Positions 5,429 through 50,974 of a stretch of DNA of 64,000 nt are shown in pieces; the stretch's first letter is position 1, and each line of letters opens with the position of its first letter. The position numbers and the translations under genes were made by a program. This stretch comes from Tubulanus polymorphus (lineage: Eukaryota > Animalia > Nemertea), in assembly GCF_964204645.1 (NCBI RefSeq), contig NC_134034.1, positions 5,182,914 through 5,246,913 of the forward strand, written 5' to 3'. The notes under the pieces are model-generated. The model searched no databases and was not told the origin of the DNA. It was given only the letters and a program-made list of their open reading frames with translations.

Positions 5429-6505
5429 AGATGTCCTGGAGGCTCCGACTTCCCTCCTCGGTCCCGGACCGAGTCCTCGGGGTATACGCGGGTTTCGTCG
5501 TCATCGTCATCGTCATGTACGAAAAGGAGGCTTGATAAGGCCTATAGCTGTAGCGGAAAACGGGGGCAAGGCGGTGCTGCCCTCTCTCTTCGAATATGGC
5601 GGTCGTTCTTCTGCTCGTCCCATAAATTCGTCGATATAATCGGCAACCATCTAATTTGTCAGGATGTCTAAACAGGTAAAAATCTTATCTTCTAAGCCCG
5701 CTACGGAGTTCGCTCACGTCGAATGATTTCTGGTAGTGAAATCAAAAAGGGAAATAACTAATATTTCGCCGCAAGGGATGATCCTCATGAGAAACCGAGA
5801 GAGATAAATATATAAAAATAGCCACGATATGAAAATTCTAATCTAGTGTATACAGATCGTGCACACCGAGCACGAATAACCTATTTTTCGGTATACGCTT
5901 ATTCTCTGCAACATGTCTCTTACATGCCCGCAAGGCCCTCAGTATATAAATCGGGTTGCCCACCCCGAATTATACCTGGATCTACCCTGGCCTACATTCG
6001 ATCGGTCTTTAGAATAATCTCGTAATCTTAAAACGGCCTGATACGAAAAGAATTGTTCCTCAGTCCTTGTTAGATTCTGACAATCACCAATAGAATAGTC
6101 TAAAGCTGCATATGAAATACTGTATGAAATTATTATTTAACGGTTTAGAATACTCTAATAATAGAGTACACCATATTTATATACATTATTTACAAATTTA
6201 CATTATTCCTAATAAAATATCGCTCTTTCAAAATCTAATTCGTTTCTTTTTAGTAGCTAGTGTTAAACCGTCTAAATATCCTGTCTTTAAAAATAAAGAC
6301 AAACGTACGACTGAGGTACGACGATACGTCTTTTACTACCGCGTATAACTAAGGGACTAAGATATTAATAAATATATCAGCAGAGCAAGCTGTCGATCAC
6401 GATTATCGTAAAAACGATAAAAGGAGACGGCTATATCTAACTGAATAGATATTATCGTAGAATTGATTACCGCGAACCAACTACGTGAATGGTCGGTCAG
6501 CCCGG

Positions 6506-7652
6506 CGGTGTTGTCATATCGCGGAAAGACGGAATCGCGGAATTTTCCAAAAACGCGGAATTTCTTCATTTTTACTATAAATAGTGAACGGGTTTTCCCA
6601 CGGGGATACCCACTGTCAGACAGGGCACCGGACCCAGCTTTTCAACACTGGGAATTAGTATTTGATAATTTATTATATCGCTAGTCGACAACTTAACGAT
6701 ACTGTTCCAAATAATGGAGAACCTAGGCAATACGTGCTTTGCGAATTCAGTGATACAGAGTATCGCTGCATTAACTGAATGAATACAAATCGATGGTACG
6801 TAAACGTAGGATTTGTGACACCATGGGTCATTCTCAAGGACTCACTTCCGAGTTAAGATTTGACTCTGGTCTCTGGATTTAAAACATTGGAAATGAATTG
6901 ATTCTAAGTGACTTAGAGTTAACTCACAACTGTGGAACTGTATCGATGTCAGACGAAAATAAATAGACATTATGTATATTTCATTCTGGTTTAGGATTGT
7001 TCATGCGTGTTGTGTGTCTACATTGTTGTTATAAGCGAAGAATGTGGTTTATCTTTTAGAATTAAATTATATGAAAGATTATAAAATGGTTTCGTTTTTT
7101 TAACGTTTACTTTGTGACTGCTATAACATATATGTTCCTATGCTGATTATTTGGATCAAAAGAATCTTATTCGTACCGGTACTGGACGACCGTAAAATTA
7201 TAATGATTTCAAAGGAATTGGAACCGGTACTTGTTTGGTCGTAGGATTTCGTGTTTGCAACCATCTACAACTACAGTCCGACACCGCGAACGTGCTCAAT
7301 ATTTATCTGATAATATTCGTTTCTGAAGTTCTCAAAAAGTCGATGAACTTCGATAGCCGAAGTTTGCCTAGTAGAAATAGACATTAGGTGCCTGGTCTCT
7401 TTCACCTCACTTGATTCTGACTTCTTCTACAGGTGGCAGCCAGTCAACGGTATCGTAATATAATGATTCCATATAAAATTGCCTGCAAATAATGGGATTC
7501 GAACCTTAGTCGTTGCATCGATCGGTCCGGTGCCCTGTCCGACAGTGGGTATCCCCGTGGGAAAACCCGTTTACTATTTAAAGTAAAAATGAAGAAATTC
7601 CGCGTTTTTGGAAAATTCCGCGATTCCGTCTTTCCGCGATATGACAACACCG
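6506..7652 (+). mobile_element. Mutator-type non-autonomous element, copy 1
   Basis: TIRs of about 125 bp (CGGTGTTGTCATATCGCGGAAAGACGG...). 9-bp TSD TCAGCCCGG at 6497-6505 and 7653-7661. A second, inverted copy lies at 53470-54585. Confidence 0.9.
6714..6795 (+). pseudogene. Ubiquitin-specific protease (peptidase C19) Cys-box exon fragment inside the MULE
   Basis: Translates MENLGNTCFANSVIQSIAALTE*IQID followed by G|GTACGT, a possible splice donor. Matches the USP Cys box NLGNTC(Y/F)xNSxxQ. Confidence 0.7.
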
Positions 7653-37420: not shown

Positions 37421-40116
37421 ATTCTTCAAACAAGCCTCAAAATCATTGGAAATATAATATGATGAATTTGATAATGTAACAAGTACAACAGTAGGTTTGC
37501 TAATTTAATTTGAAGTTGTTTGTGACAATATCTGTTACGCCTTTTTCCATTTTGGTATTATTAATTTGCCCAGATTGGCCACACTTTTTATGACGACCAA
37601 ATAGTTTCCATCCGAAATGAAATTTAAAATTTCAGTTATAAGATGTTTTGTACAAAAATGATAAAGCTAATATTTGTTCTGTTTTCTTTTCTAATCGCAG
37701 TGCCCAATTATATTTTCCTCCGAGCAAGTTATGTTGAAAGTTTTTCCGTCGGTCGTTGGTGCTTCTTCTTTCTAAGATTATTGAAATTAGAAGAAACAAT
37801 ATATTACGCGTGTTCTTTGAGTTTACTTTTGATAGTAGATATTGTGTGTATTCATATGAGGGAGATACTCAGTGATGAATACATCTTGTGAAATGAAATT
37901 CTTTTTAAGCCAATGCTCTTTTTTCTTGTTTGAAGTTCTATACGCATTTGAACTACCGTTATGACCTAAACTATATTTCAAAGCCATCATCCTTTTCTTA
38001 TAATTTGCTTTTATCTGTGTTTGTATTGAAATGATTAGAATTCAATCAGGGAAGTGTTGAAAAGGTTTGCACTCCCCTGATTCAAAGGTATACACTTCCC
38101 TGATTCAACTTAGCTTCTTCGAATTTATACATACCTTGCTTCTGTATCTCTTTTGTTCTTTTGGTACGATTCTATTTCTCTATTGATGGTATTTCGACTT
38201 ATTTGTGTACCCATTTTATTTAATTCTTCCTCTATCAGCAAAGTAGAATTTCATTCTCTGCAGCTGTAACAGTGACAATAATGATTCTAAGTAATTTGCA
38301 CGAGCAGTCTCATAACAGTGTACCATTTTCGTGGCTTTCATCATGTTTTGTTCCATATTACTCTTAACTTTAACTAAATCCTAGGGAAAATACTTTTCCC
38401 TTTTACTTTTCCATCTAGTAGAATTAGGATTTAAGATTAAGATCGTAATTTAACTATTTACTCTAGATAGTTTCCATTCCGCCGTCATTGTTGTACCCTT
38501 TCTTTTTGTCAGCATTGATTCTCCTACAAATACGAATAGTTTATTAAGTTACCGAATTTTATATATTTTTCATAACTTAACTCGAATACATGTTATTCAG
38601 TTGATACCTTTGTTTATCAGGCTCTATTCTACAAGAAAGAGAAAGCAATTTAAGAATCACTAGTTAGAAATTATTTAATACCGTACTCATAAAGCACGGC
38701 TAGAGGTAATGGTATACCTTGGTCGGTTAGTGTTAGATCTGTCAATGACATATTTTGCCTTGAAAATGATAGCCTCCACTGAAAATTGAATGTTTGGATC
38801 TCTTATTTCTTATCTTTATTATGTTTTGTTAGGTAATGCCTTTGTTTTATTTTTACAGAAACAAACATACCTGTAATTGCAATGCGTCAAATTTGTCTGA
38901 GCAGAAGAGATTGCTTGCAGGTGTCAGCACCTTCCAGCATAAATATTTTTCAAAGAAGTCAAACGTTCAATTATTACTTTTTATGATCAAAAAATTGTTT
39001 TTAATTCATTGTTATATTGTATGTTGTTATAAATTACAAAATCTAATTAGATTCAGATCAAATGTAGTAAAGCGATCTTGATGTAGGTGACAGAGTGGTA
39101 CATGAAAAACACAACACAGCAGCATACGGTCAGTTACTACCACATTCAACCACATTCGTTCACCTAAAACCTAAAAGGTAATTATTAAATATGATGTTTC
39201 ACGATAATGCCCATGGATTTAAAATATCAGTTTAGCACCAGCTGGCAGGATGACGTGATCCCGTACACACATACCTACCCATTGCATTTTACAAACTTCA
39301 ATATTTTCGATATGTAGGTATATCGGGCCTGACCCTCAATGACCTCAAATTTCCTCGCCTTCTGTTATCAATTTCTTCCTATGTTTTCGTTTGGTGGTTT
39401 TCTTCAGCGCTGCCATGTACAAAATTTCACGGGGCATGTTTACTTAACAAAAAATAAAGAAAATATGATAAAAAAATAAAGATAAAATAATTCATTATTT
39501 CATTCTATTATTAATATTATTTTTATTTGTTTCTATTATTTCAATTGGATAGAATATCAGTTTTTGTTTGTTTTTTTTCGAAGTTATTGCTGAAACTACA
39601 CGAATTATTAGACACTTTGATATGTAATCAGTCAGGACTATTTTGTAACTTTTGGTAAATATTTTTTTAAATTTGTTTGTACTCGTCGAAATATTGTATC
39701 AAAGCTTCTAACTCTTGATGTCTAGGAAGAATAATTTCAGAATTTCCATACAGATTCGAATATATGTTCCCAAGACAATGATTTCTGTAGGTAATGGACG
39801 TGGTCATTGGCTGGTCATCAACATGCTGGAAGTCCTGTTGAGTACCTATGAGAAAAAGTTTTCATTTCAAAGGGGATCATTTCTTTAATACTTATTTTTG
39901 CGATTATGATTTCATATCATTTGGATGCTTACATTGGGTAGCAGTGAATGAAGTGCGTCCAGTAGGTGGTCCATATTTAGCAAATGCCTTGCCGAGTTAT
40001 ATATGAGTAGTATTCAGCAAATACCTTGCCGAGTTATATATGAGTAGTACCTGAAATGAATGTCATTGTCATTCCATGTCCATAACGAAGAAATATTGAA
40101 AACCGGTAGCTCTTAC

Positions 40117-40371
40117 CATATGTTTTTTCATCAGACTTTTTCTACATTTCGCTTAGCGGTATTCAGTTGTTCAAGTTAATGTATGCACGATTCCGAAGAA
40201 AACATATGAATAGAATGGGCCGTGCCAAACTTTCTTATCGTGTCAATGACGTGGTGATGAAGGTGACAGTGAAGGGTGAGAAGTGTTGCAGGATAGAATT
40301 TGTGTCAACCAAAATTTAAGAAATCTATGTGGACGGTTCTTGCCATTCCTCATTCGTATTAGAATTGTAGA
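40117..40371 (-). pseudogene. EnSpm/CACTA(Mirage)-like transposase C-terminal exon fragment
   Basis: FYPATLLTLHCHLHHHVIDTIRKFGTAHSIHMFSSES resembles the CMC-EnSpm motif Y..T...H.L.H.....FGP....MF.FES. Bounded by AG and GT splice signals. Confidence 0.5.
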
Positions 40372-41734
40372 CTACAAAGATTAACATTTTATATTTTCAA
40401 ACGTTACATTTTGTGCCTACGATTAACACTTACTTCCTACAAGTTTACAGTAGTTGAAGAATTTACTCCTCTGATGCACGCCAAGCATACCCCGCAAGCA
40501 AAAAATTAATGGAGAATTAATGAATTTCACCCTTAAATCAAGATTATAAGTATGAAGGTAATATTTGTTTCTCTTAATTAGAAAGGCTTTTCTATTTATT
40601 TCATTGAATACTTACTTTTATAACCATACTTAATGTAGACGTATGATTTCATGTTGCTACGGATCAAATGGGTTTTTCTCTCTTCTGAATAAACATTCTA
40701 AGGGTGCTTTAATGCATGCTCATCTCTCTTTGATAATTTCTTTTTCATGCACTGATAAGTTACATTCAGCTGGTGGCATATTTTCATCAATAAGCTGAAA
40801 AAAAATAAAAATAATGAAATAAGCAAAAGGTTCATGCGATATGGTTATCTTATAGTCACGTCTCGTTAATGTGGAAGAAATTCCCGATTCCGTGACGTCA
40901 TCGCGTGTGACGTCATTTGCTTATTATTCAAAATGGCCGCCGCCACGAATTTGAAGCAAAGACCGTTTTTTCCCGATTAAAACATCTATTTTGGTTATCA
41001 TCGATGCTTCTGCAGGTAATTATTGATATTTAGCAAACGTAATACTAATTTCTCGTCGAATTCAGATATTTAGATCAGCTGTCTGTGTTTAAGTCGTCGA
41101 AAAATGCCGGAAATTAAAAAAAAAATTCGCGGATTTGAAAGATGCACCCAAGTTAGATCATCTCAATTTTCATGACCGTAATCGATTAACATCGTCTAAA
41201 TTCGCATTTTCACAGGGCATCAAATGCTTCGTTTTATTATCTCGTGCTATTTTCTGGTGATTTATTGCATGTTTAGATCATTTTCTTGAAATATGGCCTA
41301 GGCTATAGAGGTGCTTCCTGATTCAGTCTACACATGCCTAGGCCTAATCTTTTTTTGGCATAACTACACTGTTGAAATGTATTTCATCCTATGAAGAATA
41401 GAAACTATCATTCCTCAGAATATGGCACCGGTTTATTTGCTGTAATCCATCGTTGCTTGTGATCCTTGATGAAATAAGCCCATGATAGGCTATGATGCGA
41501 ATCCTTTAAATTTTTCAGGGAGAAGCTACAGATTCCTCGAAAGATGATGTTGATGAGTAACAGTAACAACGATGAGATTGATTGAATTAGTATGATAAAT
41601 AAAATAGGATAAACATTTATTTTGTCAATAATAAGAAGTCATCATATTATTATCAATAACAAATAAATCAACATTTTCTCATGTAAATCAACAATATTAA
41701 GATATTCTTTTATAATTCAATCACAGTTTAGTAA

Positions 41735-41870
41735 TTACAATATTTACACTTGTGTTGACTTAACACAGTCTTATTCCTGTGTAATAATTTACAATATTTA
41801 CACTTGTGTTGACTATACACAGTCTTATTCCTGTGTAATTATTTACAATATTTACACTTGTGTTGACTAT
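41735..41870. repeat. 54-bp tandem repeat, about 2.5 copies
   Basis: TTACAATATTTACACTTGTGTTGAC...CACAGTCTTATTCCTGTGTAAT units start at 41735, 41789 and 41843. Confidence 0.85.
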
Positions 41871-44462
41871 TTATAATATTTACAAAAGTAAGGTATCGGT
41901 TCCATGCAAAATACATTGCCAAACATTAATTTTGTTATCTGTAGGTAAATGGAAAGAGTGATGGAAATAAAAGAAAAGTTTGTTTGGCAGACGCAAGCCT
42001 GGACTTGAAATGTTTGCTGTTGTTGCTGAAACAGCACTTTTTCGTATTTTTGAGCATTTCAAGGAAGAAAGGTTTGTAGGTAAATATCAACGTTTTAACT
42101 AATAGTCTTGATATTTGATTGCTGTTTACACGGTCATTTAAGACACATGTTGAATTAGGATTTCTGTGAGATGGATAAGTAAATGATGAGTTAAATTATG
42201 TTGCATAGGGTTTAGATTTTAGATAAAGACCTTAATGTATCATTTCATTGTCATACGCTGTGGACTGAGTGATAACACTTGGCAATGTATTTCCATCACC
42301 ATCACTTAAAATGCAGCAGATTTTGTCACCAAAATACCATATACATTTTTTTTCAATTTGATATTTACTATGATTAATAATTTGAATTCACATGATTTTC
42401 ATTTGATTGATATAATTACAGTTTGCATGATTGTCTTTTGATCGAAAAATAATTTCAGTATGCATGATTGTTTGTTGTTTTATTCACATTCATTTTTTAT
42501 TTCAGATAAGATGCATCATGTTTCGGATCGAATTTACTGCAACTTTCCCGTTTGAGCTGATTAGCAAGAAAAACTCCGAAAGTGTTGAGAATTGAATATA
42601 AGTGCCGCTCGCTTCGTTGTGTTTCGAAATCTGCAGAAGGAAATCACATCTGCATTTACGGAATTATGCTTGCCTTCGAGAACCTGCTCAGAAAAGATAC
42701 CAATGGATTTCCACCTTCGGAGGAATGGAGGAACCTCGAAGACAAGCACGTGGATTTTTGGAGTGATGGTTTGATTGGGAAAGTGTGCAGGAAACTTTTC
42801 ACCGAATTCATGACACAACTTGCACATGTGTTCTATTTCGAAAATCTTGCTGCATTTAAAAAGTGATGGATCTTGCTGAATGTGGCATAAAGATCATACA
42901 AATGATCGTAATCATTTGTTTGATCTTTTACCACAGACAGCAGCTTTTTAGGGGCGTCCACTTTGTCATTGATGAGGAACATCCGTCGAATATGATTCCC
43001 AACAAAACACAGAATGGTATGCCTGTCTCTGAACATGGAGATCATCTTCAAGCACTCGGTTAAGTGCCGTCTCGCAGGGGCCCATCAGTGATTTCACTTG
43101 TGTGAAAACGCTGGTGAGTTCCTGTCGAGAGGAAGAAAGACGGGCTTGAAGTGATCTCACACGCTCAGATTGCATCGCCACCTTTGTTGAATTGTTGGAA
43201 ATCATCTTCTCCGGCGATAGTCCCTCATCAATGCATTGCGCACAGACGTAGTCGACTGTCACATCCGGTACATTCTCAATGTAACCAGCACATTGATAAT
43301 GTAGCCATTTGTGACAACGGTCGCATACGATCCAATCAATCACCCTTGTATGGTTATCTGCGTTGAGAACGCAGATCACTGCATCGCAAGGGTCATTGAT
43401 GGGTTTATGGTGTCGCAAATTTTCAGGTGTTTTCTAAGTGATTCTAATTGAAACATTTCGCTCTTCACCTCATCATCTAAAGAAGCTACTTGTGCACTGA
43501 GCGTCTGCCACTTAGCGAACAGCTCGGGATCTCTAGTAGATAATGAATTTTGATCGAGCTCAGCACATAAATTTTCAAGTAGCTGGAATAATGTTAATCG
43601 AATGCCTAAAGATAAATGAAGGGGGCGGTACTAATTGGTTGAGATTATCGATGGGGAAGAGCATTGAATTGGATATACTGATTTTTCCTCTGTTGGAGGA
43701 GGTGTCAGTTCCGGAAATGTGGCTGTCAAAGTCTGCCTGATAGGTCGAAACGGTTCTTTGCTCTAACTGACACTCAGGGTTATCCAAAGTACCTCCAACA
43801 AGCATTGGTGTATGGGGAGATCCATCCCTTCGCCTGAGATTTGCGAGTTTAACGACAAACCACAAACAAGGGAATGCGTCCGAAGCTCCAATATGGCCCA
43901 TAGCATTGCACAACCAGCAGTAATCTCCGATAATGAACTTACTTATGTTGAAAATATGCTGCTTGCCCTCTTTGTCCTGAATTTGAATTGAATTTAGTTC
44001 GAAATATTGCTCAGAATATTGGCTGAAAATGGTCCGAATGTTTTCCGAGGAGTCGTAGGCTTCAAAGAAGGCGAGCAGTACCGTTTGGCCAATGCTATTG
44101 GGTGTACTAGAGTTGACGACCGAAAACGCCAGTTTAGTAATCGTACCCCTCTTGTCTGCACCAAACTTTATCCAGATCGAATCATTGTGTTCTGGATGAA
44201 ATTTCAGTTGGTCGGTCTGATAAAGTCTGGTACAGACTGCTTTGATTATAGATCGTAAGCAGGGTACACGAGCGTAAACTACCCCTGTCTTCTTCGATTT
44301 CGCTGAAACCAGCATTGGTATACTACCAACCTCTAGATTTAGGCTGCTCAATACGGCAGATTTATATTTTCGCATCGAGATCTGGCTAGGTAGTATATCT
44401 AAGCCATGCGATATCAAAAAACTTTTCATTTTGTCAATTCTGGTTTCAGGAATTCGAAGAAG

Positions 44463-46979
44463 TGTAACAACTAGGATTTTCAGTGCACTCGGGAACTAGC
44501 TCGTCAAAATAAATCCAAAGTCATCAATTCCATCTTGATAAAATATCTTTTGTTCAAATGTTTGGTCGGCTTCCGACCGACCGCAACAACTGCTCAGTAC
44601 AAACTGCCAACTAAAAGTGTGTGTTGTGTGCCTCATTCTGTTTCAACTGACTCTTATATCTATATATATATATATATATTCCTGCATAGTAACAAAAACT
44701 TAGGTATGAAAAACAAAGGTGACAGACAGTGAGTAGACAATTTGAGCAACAACATGCCATAAACAAAGACAGAAAGAACATATGACTAATTACTTTACAA
44801 ACACGACTAACAAATACATTTCTAAACAAAACAACAAGTTGCTATACTCCACTATACTTTCTCTGCGACTTTTGCATATACGCTAAAGTCGAGAAACTAC
44901 TACAGGGTTAAATCATGTAAAAAAAACTAGGAAAAAATACAATAGTATCCAACCATACTTGTTGACCAAGCGCAACAACGTTACAAAATTAAAAAAAAAA
45001 TCATATCTCTAACGTAACAATACTTGTTGACTATAAAGCCCAACAACGTTACAAAATCATTAAAAAACCGTATCTCGAACGTAACAATACTTGTTGACTA
45101 TAAAGCCCAACAACGTTACAAAATCATTAAAAAAACGTATCTCGAACGTAACAATACTTGTTGACTATAAAGCGCTACAACGTTACAAAATCATTAAAAA
45201 AACGTATCTAGAACGTAACAATACTTGTTGACTATAAAGCCCAACAACGTTACAAAATCATTAAAAAAACGTATCTCGAACGTAACACTACTTGTTGACT
45301 ATAAAGCGCAACAACGTTACGAAATCATTAAAAAACGTATCTCGAACGTAACAATACTTGTTGACTATAAAGCGCAACAACGTTACAAAATCATTAAAAC
45401 CTAATTACTCGGAATCTCATCTTATCTAGAAAACATGTACTACATAATATATGACAAATTACACAATGAACATAAAAAAACAATTACACAATCAACAAAA
45501 ACCACAATACTAGACATAAGTGCTCAAATTGTTTAAGAGATCTAAGGTATATATAATATGAAGAAAAAAAACAGACGGAGGGGTACGTGGTATTTCACAA
45601 TACATGTGAAACAAGGCATTTGACATTGAAATATTGACTAATCTGCTTGCACATTTGCCATCTCAATATCACTTTAGAGATGGTCGCGAGCGTATACAAA
45701 AGTTTAATAAGCATCAAATCAATGACGACACTATTCCTTTTATTCCTAAAAGTTATGTCTTTTTAATCGATCGCAAATGGAACACAAATTTTGGATTTTC
45801 GCATCGAGAATAGAAATATCGGCTGCGGTTTCCTCAGCAGAATACACATTATCTACTAAGATGCACTGATCAGTGACATGGTTAGGGATTTTTTCGAAAT
45901 TGAGATCCAGCTCAATCGCGCTAAAAACTGGGTAACTCACGAATTCAAGTAGCTTTGATGTGTCTAGTCGCTCCGGGTGTAAAATATCCACAAACAAATG
46001 CTCATCATCCCAGTCTAAGATGCCAACGTCGATTGGTGAACTAACTATCATTGGGCACTGATTCTCGCCCAGATTCATGCATATAACTTCTCTGATAATT
46101 CGGAGGTTTTTCCAATTTGTTTACGCTGATTGAACATTGTAAGCCTCGGCAGATCTCGAATTTTCTTCGCGGACTTTTGACGAGTTCGCTTCTCAGGATT
46201 CTAACAAAATCGGGCAAATTGTCCGATGATATAACAACGGTTGCAGCATGCGTCCTGTGCGTGACAACATGTCCGGCTCCAACAGTTGAGTCCACGATTC
46301 TTGCAAAGTACAGCCATTACTTATCCAAAACTAGGCACAAGATTGTTAACCTGCAGTGCCTGTCAGATCTTGCCCACGGGTTCTCCACCAATTATAACAA
46401 CTAGGATTTTCAGTGCACTCGGGAACTAGCTCGTCAAAATAAATCCAAAGTCATCAATTCCATCTTGATAAAATATCTTTTATTCAAATGTTTGGTCGGC
46501 TTCCGACCGACCGCAACAACTGCTCAGTACAAACTGCCAACTAAAAGTGTGTGTTGTGTGCCTCATTCTGTTTCAACTGACTCTTATATCTATATATATA
46601 TATATTCCTGCATAGTAACAAAAACTTAGGTATGAAAAACAAAGGTGACAGACAGTGAGTAGACAATTTGAGCAACAACATGCCATAAACAAAGACAGAA
46701 AGAACATATGACTAATTACTTTACAAATACGACTAACAAATACATTTCTAAACAAAACAACAAGTTGCTATACATTCTGTTTCAACTGACTCTTATATCT
46801 ATATATATATATTCCTGCATAGTAACAAAAACTTAGGTATGAAAAACAAAGGTGACAGACAGTGAGTAGACAATTTGAGCAACAACATGCCATAAACAAA
46901 GACAGAAAGAACATATGACTAATTACTTAACAAACACGACTAACAAATACATTTCTAAACAAAACAACAAGTTGCTATA
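44463..46979 (-). mobile_element. Non-autonomous LTR retroelement (TRIM/LARD-like), recent insertion
   Basis: Near-identical LTRs at 44463-44846 and 46393-46772, plus a partial tandem copy at 46773-46979. PBS TGGTGGAGAA (tRNA-Ala-like) at 46381-46390. Purine-rich tract AGAGAAAGTATAGTGGAG next to the 3' LTR. TSD GAAG (or GAAGAAG). No gag/pol motifs. Confidence 0.85.
44955..45399. repeat. 67-bp tandem array (about 6.5 units) inside the LTR element
   Basis: AACGTAACAATACTTGTTGACTATAAAGCCCAACAACGTTACAAAATCATTAAAAAACGTATCTCG-type units start at 45011, 45078, 45145, 45212, 45279 and 45345. Confidence 0.92.
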
Positions 46980-47477
46980 GAAGAAGATGCATCTGCAAGG
47001 CGTCTGATGGAGAGAGCTTGCTCATTGGGCCAATTTTGGCCGAATCGAGGGCCCCTCTGGTTAGGTCTGGATTCTGCTTGACGAAAGTCGCAAGAGTTGC
47101 AACAAACTCGTCAGAGCAGAATCCAGAGTCCACACGTGTGGACGTACTAACCAGAAAGGTCCTCAATCGATTAGCTCTCTCGACCAGAGACCTTCTAGAT
47201 GCATGCAAGGATGGCTTGCTTGGAACCGATACCTGAAAATAACACAATGATTTTGTTGAATTAAGTTTTCTTGCATAGATACATGTTTCATCCCTGCAAG
47301 TCACTTCCAGCAAGTCTTTTCGCAATTGGTTTTCCAAAGTTTGTTTTTCTTGAATTAGGGCCTTGATTTTTGCCTGCTGGCTTTGAATTTGGATGGATTG
47401 ATTATGTATAATAATTGGGTGATCAATTAACTGGACTTGCAGGGATGAAACATGGGATAATGGATTATAATACTCAG

Positions 47478-47700
47478 ATTCGATGAAATTTGCTGATTGG
47501 TGATTCGTTGATGCGATGAAATTAGCTGATTGTTGATTCGTTGATCCGATGAAATTATAATTTGCTGATTGGTGATTCGTTGATCCGATTAAATTTGCTG
47601 ATTGGTGATTCGTTGATCCGATGAAATTATAATTTGCTGATTGGTGATTCGTTGATTCGATGAAATTATAATTTGCTGATTGGTGATTGGATGATTTATC
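47478..47700 (-). repeat. Coding minisatellite (30/36-bp units; STNHQSAN[YN]FI)
   Basis: About 6-7 in-frame repeats in the N-terminal region of the RAG1-like ORF. Confidence 0.85.
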
Positions 47701-49712
47701 GTAATTAACTAATTGGCGATTGGATGATTCGTTGTTATTAGCGGATGAATCTGAAATAAGAAAAGAAAAATTTAGCAAGATCTAATTATCTGATTAAATT
47801 AGTCCGGATTTAAACCCTCCAGATAAGAACGGATCAGTTAGGGTGGGCCCTTCTTCACCCGTCAAGGGATTCGAACCCACTACGCTAAAGCTGTTCTCCG
47901 AACCCCTTGACCTCACGAGTCGTTGGAGTCGTTACTAGCCGACCAGAATCCGGTCATACCAATCACAGCGCTTGTAACAACCGACATTAGGCTTCTATTG
48001 GATTTCCCGTTAAATGGACCAATCAGCGAACGTTTTACCGAACAAGGAAGTATTTCGCAAATCGATGTCTGACGTCATGAGCAACAGTGCCAGTAATGAA
48101 ATCACGCTTCGTGGGGCCAGGGGGCTGGTGGAAGCGAGTTCGGGAGTGATACCGGACCTCTGGCAAGCGAGGATGGGGTGGGCCTAAATATATATTATTA
48201 AGACAATGTCACCAAGCGCAAGGTGCGAGGTGATTTTCCAGCGCCTGGTACTGGCGGGGTCTGGGTTCTTATTTGGGGTGATTTTCTGCATTTCAGTAAA
48301 GTAAAGAATTCATGTGAAATTCCCTTTCCCTGCTTCTTATACAGTTAAACAAAGATGTAATATTTCATTTTAAACGAAAGTATGTATTATGTAAAATTAT
48401 GTAAGATTTTTTTCAGTAATGTAGGAGGGGGGCAGGCTTACTGGCCCACCTCCCTAGATCTGCAAAATAACTTACTGAAATTAATTTGTTTTTCATGATT
48501 GGTGATTGATTGATTAGTTTCTTCGATTTTTGTTTTCGAACATTGTTTAGATTCTACAAAAAAAAGAATTCATGTGCATATCAAGATACCTATATATTTT
48601 TGGAATAAAGATAAAGATTTGTAAATGAATAATGTTGTTTTTTAATCTTATATTACCATTTTTGGCTTTTTTGTGGCTGCTGCAGCCCTGGCCTGTTCTT
48701 TTCTTTTCCTCGAAACTCTGAGTCTTATCATATAAGGCCTATTTATTATTTGACTTCTGAAAAAAAAAACATGAAAAAATTATAAGATTGAGCTGAGCAA
48801 AAAGGTCGGAAAAAGGCGTTGTTTCGTTAGATTTCCTATACAGAAGAATAACTGCGGAGTTTCAGGTGTTCCGTGACAATTCATAGGCCACGATACTCTT
48901 AAATCCTAATGGAAAACGTTCAGAATGAAAGCCAATGTTGTGCCCTAGAAAAACAGCTGTTTTACGTTGTTATTTCACCATTTCGTTTCGAGGGGTGGAA
49001 GGTTGGTTTGCGGAAATCAAATGAAATTTTCTCGCCGCGGTTTTCACGGCAAAAGCTTGTTAAATGCACATTTTCGAGTTATTACGATATAAATGTCATA
49101 TAATTGGAAGTTGATTTTAATAATTAGTTAATTAACAGTAGATTCCGCTACTCTTTACACCCCCTGCATAAATTATAGAATAGACTCGTCCAGCTACGCA
49201 CGGCCTCGGTGCGCGGCCCGCGCTGGAACCGGCAAATTTCACGCATTCAAACAACTAGATCTCGGTCAATTCTTAATCAATTTTAATAAATGAACCTTCT
49301 ATATACTCCTTATAAGTAGTTTTAAAAAGTTACGTTGTGTAATAAAAAGAGCTTTCTTACTTTCCAAAATACGGTGGGAAACCACCCCTGAATCGATAGC
49401 CGAATTCGCGTTATAGCGTCTGCTGCCGATCTGACAGCTACGTCATCAAAATATCGCGTCATCAAAACGTAACTTTGTAGGCGGGGTTAAACTCTAACCA
49501 ACAACTAATCATTGAACGCCGTAGATAAAATAGAATTTGAATGACAGTTCTTGGCGTTTGACCTTTTTTTATAGGAAAATGCGAAGGGGAGACATTTTGA
49601 CCGTTACGCGCCGAGGTAACTAGGGACAACGCATTTCCGCTTATTATTGTATTCTTTCCAGCGAAATCGTTGCATTAACGAGACGTGTAGTATTGCCCTA
49701 TATAAAAAAAAT

Positions 49713-50329
49713 AAATATAGCTGCAAAGCAGCGACAACGGGTCTCTGCCTTGCTGGTTTAAATGTTGCTCTGGGAAGCGCACAAAGATTTCACCAATTTA
49801 TAACATGTGGCTATTTTGAAGGAGCGCGACACATATCCGGGATATATGGATCCACAAGGGCTACCACGTAAAAAAGTACTGATGTACCTTAATTGTCTGG
49901 TGCTTTCATAGTTCCGTTGGGAGTTGCATGGACTAATCGCTCTCATTGGCATATGGCACTTATGTATATATGTACTTATACCATGTTTTTGATGTATCCA
50001 GCTTTGAAACTGAATCAATCTACTTGTACTCAATAAATGCTAATTGATTTCAGCATGCAGTCGTGAAGCATTTTGACAATATCACATCATTGAAGATCTT
50101 GATTTGTTCTATCAAGAACTCAATCTTATTCTGATGAGTTGACATTGAACAGAGATAGAAATACATCTCTAGTCTGTTAATTCGATAAAAGACATCTGTT
50201 TTATTGAAATATTTGAAAACATACATATGTAAAGTTGTAGATTGCCAATAAAGCACTTATTTTCAATATTATAATAAATTAATTACTGATGGAATCCCAA
50301 GCGACGAATCCCTTCAGGTCACATGTATG
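49713..50329 (-). repeat. Dispersed ~615-bp repeat, copy B (inverted relative to 29929-30544)
   Basis: Colinear reverse-complement similarity to copy A, including the terminal GCTGCAAAGCAGC hairpin. Confidence 0.75.
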
Positions 50330-50974
50330 TAAAATGTCAGATCACCCGTTATTGCTGCGTTACAGCTTTATTTTATATTTGATTTTTGGAAGGTCCCTGA
50401 TGCAGTCAGTTTGTCTAAGCATCGAAGCAATGCAGTCTAACTAGTTTACGTCTCAGTTGCAGCGTGGTAGCGCGGACATTATATTGCTCACTTAAATCAC
50501 TTACACAGGCCGATGTTTTTCAGTGTGTAATCTCCATCGTACTCAGCATTACAGGGACGATGAGGAATTGAATTTAAGGTACCCGAGCCCTCAACATCAT
50601 TCGAGCAAAAGACCTTAACTGACTTCTCAGAATTTAATTATGAGTCTACTAGTAGGTTTTTCTAAATTGCTGAATGCTTTTTGCTCTTTGAAAATTAGTC
50701 AAATAAATTTTCATTCTATTGAAAGAAATTCTACTGAACACAGATTTTGAAATGTATGATGTGTTTTTTGATTTATCCAGGTGAAATAATTACAGCAAAA
50801 TCAACTGACGACCAACAAAGTGAAGTTTTCATTTATCTTCGGATAATTTGTCTACCCCCCATGATACAAGCATTTTGGCTACACCTTTTGAAACCTCAAC
50901 GCTTCATCTACTCGCGCCAATTAGTCAGCCTCAGTCGATTTTCATGCCATCTTACCTCTCTCCACCTCTGTATG

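Follow-up and report, generated by a model that had tools for sequence, protein, structure and literature searches.

A Very Probable Chapaev-Group Transposon, Now Dead, in the Nemertean Tubulanus polymorphus Encoding a RAG1-Like Transposase with a PHD-Tipped Stalk

Introduction

Could a transposase of the RAG1 type carry, within its own chain, the kind of chromatin reader that RAG1 receives in trans from the PHD finger of RAG2? The question is raised by a locus of the nemertean Tubulanus polymorphus, located in a 64,000-nucleotide stretch of contig NC_134034.1 (positions 5,182,914 to 5,246,913 of the forward strand), which is called here the window and whose own numbering is used throughout. 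An earlier note, made from the letters of the window alone, had described in it a dead transposase of RAG1/Transib/Chapaev fold with a PHD finger built into its catalytic domain, and had proposed that chromatin reading could take place there in cis. Our analysis identified the segment 40857–49687, with high confidence, as a dead, once-mobile cut-and-paste DNA transposon of the Chapaev group (CMC/CMCT), whose transposase combines a RAG1/Transib architecture with a stalk tipped by a PHD finger. Chromatin reading in cis by such an enzyme is plausible.

Among the unsettled points in the origin of V(D)J recombination is the route by which RAG gained chromatin reading, whether by way of the RAG2 PHD, of an allosteric activation by H3K4me3 or of the two together, and a sister lineage of the same fold with a PHD fused at a defined structural position offers a directly testable comparison point. 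The questions that it raises are whether tethering to histones is beneficial to a RAG1-fold transposase, and whether such a tether acts on target choice or on catalysis. The presence of intact, recently active copies in the same genome, together with Trp-type versions in echinoderms, makes such experiments feasible.

A PHD Finger within the Transposase Core

Five open pieces on the minus strand of 42561–47778, the strand of all the gene features given here, read together as one protein. Apart from a low-complexity repeat (STNHQSANYNF) and a short coiled coil, the N-terminal piece (46978–47778) comprises the conserved segment S..A...TL..R......IS (KPSLHASRRSLVERANRLR, 47161–47217) and the first helix of a RAG1-DDBD-like region (LSPSDALQMHLLL, 46978–47016). 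It opens directly behind a splice-acceptor-like ttatttcag, and the long open reading frame (ORF) of an intact sister family, described below, likewise lies behind splice-acceptor-like sequence. The first core piece (43623–44459), recognised by Pfam DUF1280 and by tblastn against an intact paralogue, includes RIPETRIDKM (44427–44456) and contains DDBD/PreR-like helices and the RNase H-like fold, with the D1 motif FGADKRG (44145–44165), the D2 motif GDYCWLC (43908–43928) and a C(2)C zinc motif that is damaged, reading PCLWF (43857–43871). After a first frameshift, the second core piece (43403–43621) supplies the ascending helix of the stalk and LHLSLG (43604–43621), the counterpart here of an LHIxLG motif that does not vary in the family. 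A second frameshift precedes the PHD finger (43233–43388), of the form C-x4-C...C-x2-C-x4-H-x2-C...C-x2-C, which runs from CDAVIC (43371–43388) to CAQC (43233–43244) and is followed by the descending stalk helix (43011–43232; helix 69–111 of the modelled piece), ending in RQAYHS (43011–43028). The piece after the third frameshift (42836–43006) carries FVGNH (42992–43006) and the helices of a ZnH2-like region, and the one after the fourth (42561–42827) carries an H(3)H motif with its second His replaced (ITPKIHVLVFEVP), ITPKIH... (42729–42767), the catalytic-E motif SEQVLE (42675–42692) and the stop codon. Comparison with the intact paralogue (tblastn) located the frame changes near 43622, 43400, 43010–43020 and 42830, in agreement with the count of about four in the earlier note, and every motif which that note had listed for a single minus-strand transposase was found at the place reported for it.

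The window copy keeps the catalytic residues D, D and E. It reads PCLWF for PCLWC and has Glu in place of the second His of H(3)H, the full motif set being present in the family alignment. Two zinc ligands are altered, as had been noted before; both were lost from the RAG1-type C(2)C/H(3)H site, whereas the PHD is unaffected, with all eight of its ligands intact (C11, C16, C32, C35, H40, C43, C59 and C62 of the piece 42966–43418). These eight positions are invariant or at least 90% conserved in 34 relatives, and the window PHD also retains the Trp that precedes the zinc-binding His by two residues. The match of this PHD to the Pfam model (PF00628) scored 25.4 bits against a cut-off of 24 (E 1.4e-5).

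The fold was modelled with AlphaFold2 on L011, an intact paralogue in this genome (674 residues of its core, 75-sequence alignment), with a pLDDT of 91.6 and a pTM of 0.80. Between LHIxLG and FVGNH, the model shows a helix (322–365), a PHD-sized zinc module (366–423) and a second helix (424–465), so that in this segment two helices, each of about 43 residues, are predicted to pair in an antiparallel coiled-coil hairpin with a PHD of about 55 residues at its tip. From the length of these helices, the arm would measure roughly 60 Å. The complete C4HC3 PHD between D2 and E, flanked by coiled-coil-like helices, that had been read from the sequence is thus borne out by the Pfam match, by a match to the PHD of BPTF described below, by the conservation of the ligands and by the model.

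Among 73 database representatives having both anchor motifs, the length of the LHIxLG–FVGNH segment was bimodal. The 28 representatives matching a strict PHD pattern have segments of 194–236 residues with 8–15 Cys, and the others have segments of about 92–168 residues with 0–5 Cys, except for two PHD-bearing sequences missed by the pattern (161 and 236 residues, with 9 and 12 Cys, respectively). As the hairpin was found in all the sampled Chapaev transposases, the stalk appears to be general to Chapaev, with the PHD added at its tip. RAG1 has a short helical hairpin where these enzymes carry the long coiled-coil stalk and the PHD.

A quick maximum-likelihood tree (LG+G4, unrooted) was built from core columns only, with the stalk and PHD columns removed and the window's five pieces joined with X at the breaks. 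The PHD was present in 33 of the 76 sampled sequences, and one change separates them from the 43 PHD-less ones; the window copy groups with Tubulanus families at a support of 98. The PHD is, therefore, not an insertion private to the window copy, a possibility which the earlier note had set against its own reading, and its presence at the tip of the stalk marks one deep clade. The PHD-bearing members with a name come from the nemertean and from the echinoderms Holothuria, Amphiura and Antedon, with no further taxa obtained in a second homologue search, and one of these proteins is labelled in UniRef as 'Zinc finger PHD-type domain-containing protein'.

Family Assignment and Core Fold

The piece 43575–44429 of the window matched Pfam DUF1280 (PF06918) with an E value of 2.2e-18 (67 bits against a cut-off of 25), and a match to this family was also found in 27 of the 34 PHD-clade relatives. 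Yuan and Wessler reportedly recognised, in 2011, a CMC superfamily that includes Chapaev. DUF1280 is the Chapaev transposase and has been grouped with RAG1 (Majorek et al. 2014, PMC3985635); Kapitonov & Koonin 2015 (PMC4411706) assigned Chapaev to the Transib superfamily, and the group also belongs to the 'CMCT' clade (PMC12730594). Homologues were detected in amphioxus, echinoderms and sponges, and several have both PF12560 (RAG1 importin-binding, Chapa region) and DUF1280. One RefSeq protein of Tubulanus polymorphus coincides exactly with a part of the ORF of an intact paralogue. PF12560 was recorded only for PHD-less homologues, and at E ≤ 0.01 it was found in none of 10 full-length and 34 PHD-clade proteins, a comparison that did not extend to the 5' exon of the window element.

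A search of PDB with the single sequence of the intact paralogue (phmmer) gave no match. A profile of 16 family members matched amphioxus RAG1L (E 1.2e-8) and vertebrate RAG1 (about 3e-7), the matches covering FVGNH, H(3)H and the catalytic E and, weakly, the C(2)C motif. When the model of the paralogue was compared with PDB by Foldseek, 49 significant matches were obtained, all of them to RAG1, BbRAGL or HzTransib (E 7.6e-16 to 9.5e-6; best values of 7.6e-16, 3.9e-12 and 1.2e-8, respectively), and the 50th match had an E of 0.16. With VIA-align, residues 11–641 of the model were superimposed on residues 460–1006 of mouse RAG1 with a Z of 27.6 and a root-mean-square deviation of 3.8 Å over 451 residues, followed by HzTransib (Z 26.3) and BbRAGL (Z 25.6), and the next rows, at Z of about 11, were generic coiled coils matching residues 318–466 only. 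The RAG1/Transib/Chapaev fold proposed from the sequence is, therefore, supported by the profile matches and by the structural matches of the paralogue model, in addition to DUF1280, and is in line with the published grouping of Chapaev with Transib (PMC4411706) and within CMCT (PMC12730594).

The likeness to RAG1 that had also been claimed for the N-terminal part holds in one of its two segments. The LSPSDALQMHLLL segment aligns with the start of the DDBD, being the structural equivalent of its first helix in RAG1 (residues 10–12 of the model correspond to about 459–461 of RAG1). On the other hand, the resemblance of KPSLH...RANRLR to the nonamer-binding domain was not recovered by profile, as the PDB matches of the N-terminal conserved segment were at chance level and did not include RAG1.

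At the other end of the protein, an RKC-x-CGGF...C-x2-C motif after the catalytic E is conserved in the ORFs of L011, L019, L054, L055 and L056 and in the proteins P0002 and P0003. It looks like a zinc ribbon and forms a small beta hairpin (652–666) in the model; BbRAGL aligns up to residue 670, and the motif may match the C-terminal tail of BbRAGL.

Ends and Copies of the Element

The extent first given for the transposase, 42561–48731, proved too small for the element. In a BLAST comparison of the window with the genome copies, the homology of at least five of them breaks off exactly at 40857 and 49687, which delimit an element of 8,831 bp including two nested insertions, or about 6 kb without them, with the transposase gene on the minus strand. 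A 15-bp terminal inverted repeat (TIR; CACGTCTCGTTAATG) occupies 40857–40871 on the plus strand, at the side of the element that is 3' with respect to the gene, and is perfectly matched by a second one on the minus strand (49673–49687), which ends in ...GTG on the plus strand. The element is flanked by a target-site duplication (TSD), TAGT, at 40853–40856 and 49688–49691, and other copies of the same family are flanked by TGGC, GGTC and GGTA. The TSD was of 4 bp in all seven insertions examined, from this family and the sister family, and so does not match the canonical 5 bp of Transib and RAG. The CAC- ends that the earlier note had expected are thus present, and termini 5'-CAC...GTG-3' together with a TSD of 3–4 bp are hallmarks of Chapaev (PMC4079192).

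The family was mobile by cut-and-paste, its 15-bp CAC-ended inverted repeats being recognised and 4-bp target duplications being made, and a long terminal repeat (LTR) element, a short interspersed element (SINE), the four frameshifts and the substitutions later broke the window copy, which is itself an ordinary dead transposon. Copies of this family are 85–96% identical, with an intact frame in none, and the family is extinct in this genome. The position of the second His of H(3)H is occupied by E, K or G in every same-family copy in which the motif was found. The family may have spread mostly as a passenger of the enzyme of another family.

Two further observations concern these copies. An internally deleted, non-autonomous derivative (L026, G000:C6:17262208-17266191), with the TSD GGTA, joins the equivalent of window positions 40859–42709 directly to that of 49410–49689. 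In addition, the family copy at G000:C8:6783000-6798000 (L002, L006–L009, L023, L027–L032, L035 and L039) contains a tandem array of at least four units of about 2.18 kb, each spanning the 3' half of the transposase together with the subterminal region on the 3' side.

Histone Reading and Alternative Functions of the PHD

A 62-residue query containing the window PHD matched the PHD of BPTF without gaps (E 1e-6), with Trp at both BPTF positions 23 and 32, which are two of the four residues of the H3K4me3 cage. Other best matches, by sequence or structure, were KDM5B, KDM5A, PHF13, DIDO1, TAF3, Alfin-like proteins, PHF2, PHF8 and Pygo, and the structural neighbours of the model of the window PHD have nearly all been solved as H3K4me2/3 readers. 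The consensus of the clade, from 34 relatives, is W..C..C..W.H..C. That the domain could be a reader is suggested by the retention of the Trp before the His, equivalent to W453 of RAG2, a residue required for methyl-lysine binding (PMC10629977). The chances that the PHD of the Trp-bearing families binds the methylated H3 tail (H3K4me2/3) are close to even, if slightly below.

If this were the case, binding of the H3 tail would tether the transposase to active chromatin or activate it there, and a single chain would do what the PHD of RAG2 does for RAG1. The stalk presumably has its base immediately ahead of the position occupied in RAG1 by residue 848, and this would place the reader on the side of the target DNA. 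Residue 848 of RAG1 acts on target DNA (PMC10629977). The broader proposal, that a deep, multi-phylum clade of RAG1-fold enzymes reads histone marks in cis and that integration is steered to, or activated by, H3K4-methylated chromatin, is put forward tentatively, and we hold it to be the less probable of the two. If this is true, the clade would have solved independently, and in one chain, the problem for which the RAG lineage uses RAG2, and it would offer a natural experiment on how chromatin targeting evolves, including a sub-lineage that re-tuned or abandoned the methyl-lysine cage.

Several findings weigh against the interpretation of the element and its PHD set out above, or limit it. Only two of the four cage positions of BPTF can be aligned, those of Tyr10 and Tyr17 being the ones that cannot. 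In the five intact families checked in the genome, Trp-x-His is replaced by Pro-Tyr/Phe-His and the other Trp by Tyr/Phe (Tyr/Phe..C), so methyl-lysine reading is not a conserved function of the whole clade. The placement on the target-DNA side relies on an equivalence of motifs with RAG1 and not on a superposition, and the fold is that of a paralogue only 34–37% identical to the pieces of the window, not that of the window's own protein. In the tree, the split between PHD-bearing and PHD-less sequences had an SH-aLRT support of only 73, which becomes 99 if one long-branch PHD-less sequence is placed on the PHD side, and since the tree is unrooted, a gain of the PHD is not told apart from a loss. 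Finally, the family of the window itself has no intact copy, and all of its motif-bearing copies lack the second His of H(3)H.

The Pro-Tyr/Phe-His subtype of the PHD was seen at L011, L019, L054, L056, L057 and L058, in all cases with the complete set of zinc ligands and the stalk. At least in the sub-lineage of the intact families, the cage has been altered or lost, with the stalk and the zinc ligands kept.

This loss of the Trp with retention of ligands and stalk argues for a function independent of the cage, and it is a point in favour of the alternative that the PHD is a zinc module for binding DNA or transposon ends, which would help, from the stalk, to find or pair the ends of the element. 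Zinc modules for end recognition are frequent in transposases; in the piggyBac transposase, for instance, a C-terminal, cross-brace cysteine-rich domain binds the terminal repeats. A second conserved motif, the C-terminal CxC...CxxC, is also present here. However, W..C and W.H are preserved at both of the cage positions that can be aligned, in the window PHD as well as in most of the clade, and the nearest sequences and structures are nearly all H3K4me readers, none of the matches listed being described as a DNA-binding PHD-like domain. We consider a DNA module unlikely, although it is the strongest of the competing explanations.

Held at the apex of the coiled coil, the zinc module could also serve, like the zinc hook of Rad50, for oligomerisation, joining two transposase subunits or two synaptic complexes without any reading. 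The stalk of the model (318–466) matched the coiled-coil Zn hook of Rad50 with a Z of 10.8, and both have their zinc site at the same apex of an antiparallel coiled coil; but a Z of about 11 is the level that generic coiled coils reach in the same list (Tc toxins, dynein, BAR domains), and the tip is a full two-zinc PHD with a clear sequence signal of that family and not a CxxC hook, so that a hook seems improbable. Lastly, a pseudogene of a host gene, either a domesticated RAG1-like or PHD protein, with an incidental resemblance to mobile elements, could be imagined from the NCBI annotation of related loci as merely 'uncharacterized protein', but this reading is refuted, to the point of being hardly credible, by the perfect TIRs and the TSD, by the dispersed copies with different TSDs, by the internally deleted derivative and by the sister families with 100% identical copies.

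The annotation of these loci has a wider consequence, as many 'uncharacterized' animal proteins combining a PHD with DUF1280 are transposases.

Comparison with Known Systems

The element has in common with Chapaev the DUF1280 domain, the CAC...GTG ends, the 4-bp TSD, a single transposase gene and a DDE enzyme with C(2)C and H(3)H between D2 and E. Described Chapaevs carry an N-terminal Chapa zinc domain, similar to the RAG1 NZD, with or without a RING, whereas the clade studied here has its PHD at the tip of the stalk inside the core and no match to PF12560/Chapa. The publications consulted on Chapaev and RAG treat the Chapa and RING domains and no PHD (PMC4411706, PMC4079192, PMC12730594), and we found no description of a PHD in the Chapaev core in publications on Chapaev, on RAG evolution or on the RAG1 N-terminal zinc domain, Repbase and Dfam lying outside this search. 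To the clade, the window element adds a Trp-type family (with the Trp of the canonical cage), exact ends with their TSD, and a history of nested insertions.

With RAG1, RAG1L (ProtoRAG) and Transib (PDB 4wwx, 5zdz, 6b40 and 6pqx), the transposase shares the whole core fold, beginning with the DDBD and ending with the C-terminal domain (Z 25.6–27.6), an equivalent order of motifs (D, D, C(2)C, LH, GN, H(3)H, E) and element ends starting with CAC. It differs from them in a sequence identity of only 12–16% and in a TSD of 4 bp instead of 5 bp. A RAG2-like kelch partner gene was not found either, as there is none in the intact 5,905-bp sister element and no comparable second ORF in the window element.

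The likeness to RAG2 and RAG2L, whose C-terminal PHD reads H3K4me3/me2 in trans, consists in the association of a PHD bearing the methyl-lysine Trp with a DDE enzyme of RAG1 fold, and in the similar role proposed for it in chromatin targeting or activation. Here, however, the PHD lies on a stalk within the catalytic chain, and no kelch propeller accompanies it. The nearest PHDs by sequence are those of BPTF, KDM5 and PHF13, with RAG2 not among the matches listed, and the resemblance to the RAG2 PHD is one of analogy and not of shared ancestry of the arrangement. As to the PHD of BPTF (NURF; PDB 2f6j and 2fui), the gapless alignment spans 36 residues, in which all the ligands are identical and aromatic residues stand at 23 and 32; the two differ in the first zinc knuckle, C-x4-C here and C-x-C in BPTF, and in their context, a transposase as opposed to a chromatin remodeller.

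An Intact Sister Family and Its Transcription

A sister Chapaev family was found at L050:1090-6994 (G000:C3:4083089-4088993) and also at L051 and L053, in copies of 5,905 bp that are 100% identical. Its elements have a 14-bp CAC-ended TIR (CACGACCGTAGGCG) and TSDs of ATGC, AATT and CAAT, and they contain one ORF of 865 codons, with no other frame open for more than 153 codons. This family looks currently, or very recently, active.

In one public sequencing run of the same organism, contigs with a perfect match were detected over the ORF of the sister family, along with one spliced contig. The latter corresponds to the minus strand of L050:5300-6703, antisense to the 3' end of the transposase gene, and lacks three GT..AG introns (5611–5744, 5825–6135 and 6244–6559) on the strand opposite to the transposase. 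These introns were absent from the DNA runs, which implies that this run contains RNA. The contigs, therefore, indicate that the element is transcribed, although sense transcription of the gene is not implied by them. When its exons were translated one by one, the antisense spliced contig had stops in all frames, and it may represent a regulatory RNA or a piRNA precursor.

Nested Insertions and Internal Repeats

The transposase gene is split by a non-autonomous LTR element (44463–46978; 2,516 bp) with LTRs of 385 bp that are 99% identical and a 5-bp TSD, AGAAG, inserted between ...MHLLL and RIPETR.... An uninterrupted site was seen in a paralogous copy on contig 6, so the LTR insertion of the earlier note is real, as shown by its direct repeats, its TSD and this empty site. 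The ORFs of the LTR element had no Pfam match and no recognisable gag or pol. It contains six internal tandem repeats of 67 bp (44919–45402), and full-length and solo-LTR copies of it exist elsewhere in the genome.

The account of nested insertions in that note was, however, incomplete, as it had missed a second one, a SINE-like repeat of 326 bp on the minus strand (47850–48175) with a B-box-like GGTTCGAATCC and a 9-bp TSD (GGGTGGGCC). More than 30 copies of this repeat, 93–96% identical, are present in the genome, and the copy of the element on contig 8 has the empty site. No tRNA gene was detected by ARAGORN in 40000–50500, the SINE being tRNA-like only in its B box. Since the SINE is common to the window and contig-6 copies, whose host elements have different TSDs, the SINE-carrying version was itself mobilised.

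Regarding minor features of these insertions, the right LTR is partly duplicated (46794–46980), and several copies of the LTR element lie on contig 11 near 1.015–1.062 Mb. Within the transposon itself, 33/39-bp tandem repeats in the N-terminal coding piece (47454–47741) encode STNHQSANYNFIG-like units, the number of which varies between copies (compare L005). Finally, two CRE-like octamers (TGACGTCA) and then AAAATGGCCGCCGCC on the plus strand come directly after the left TIR (40885–40950), and three 54-bp tandem repeats are found deeper in the element (41735–41896), all of which may be subterminal repeats with a regulatory or transposase-binding role.

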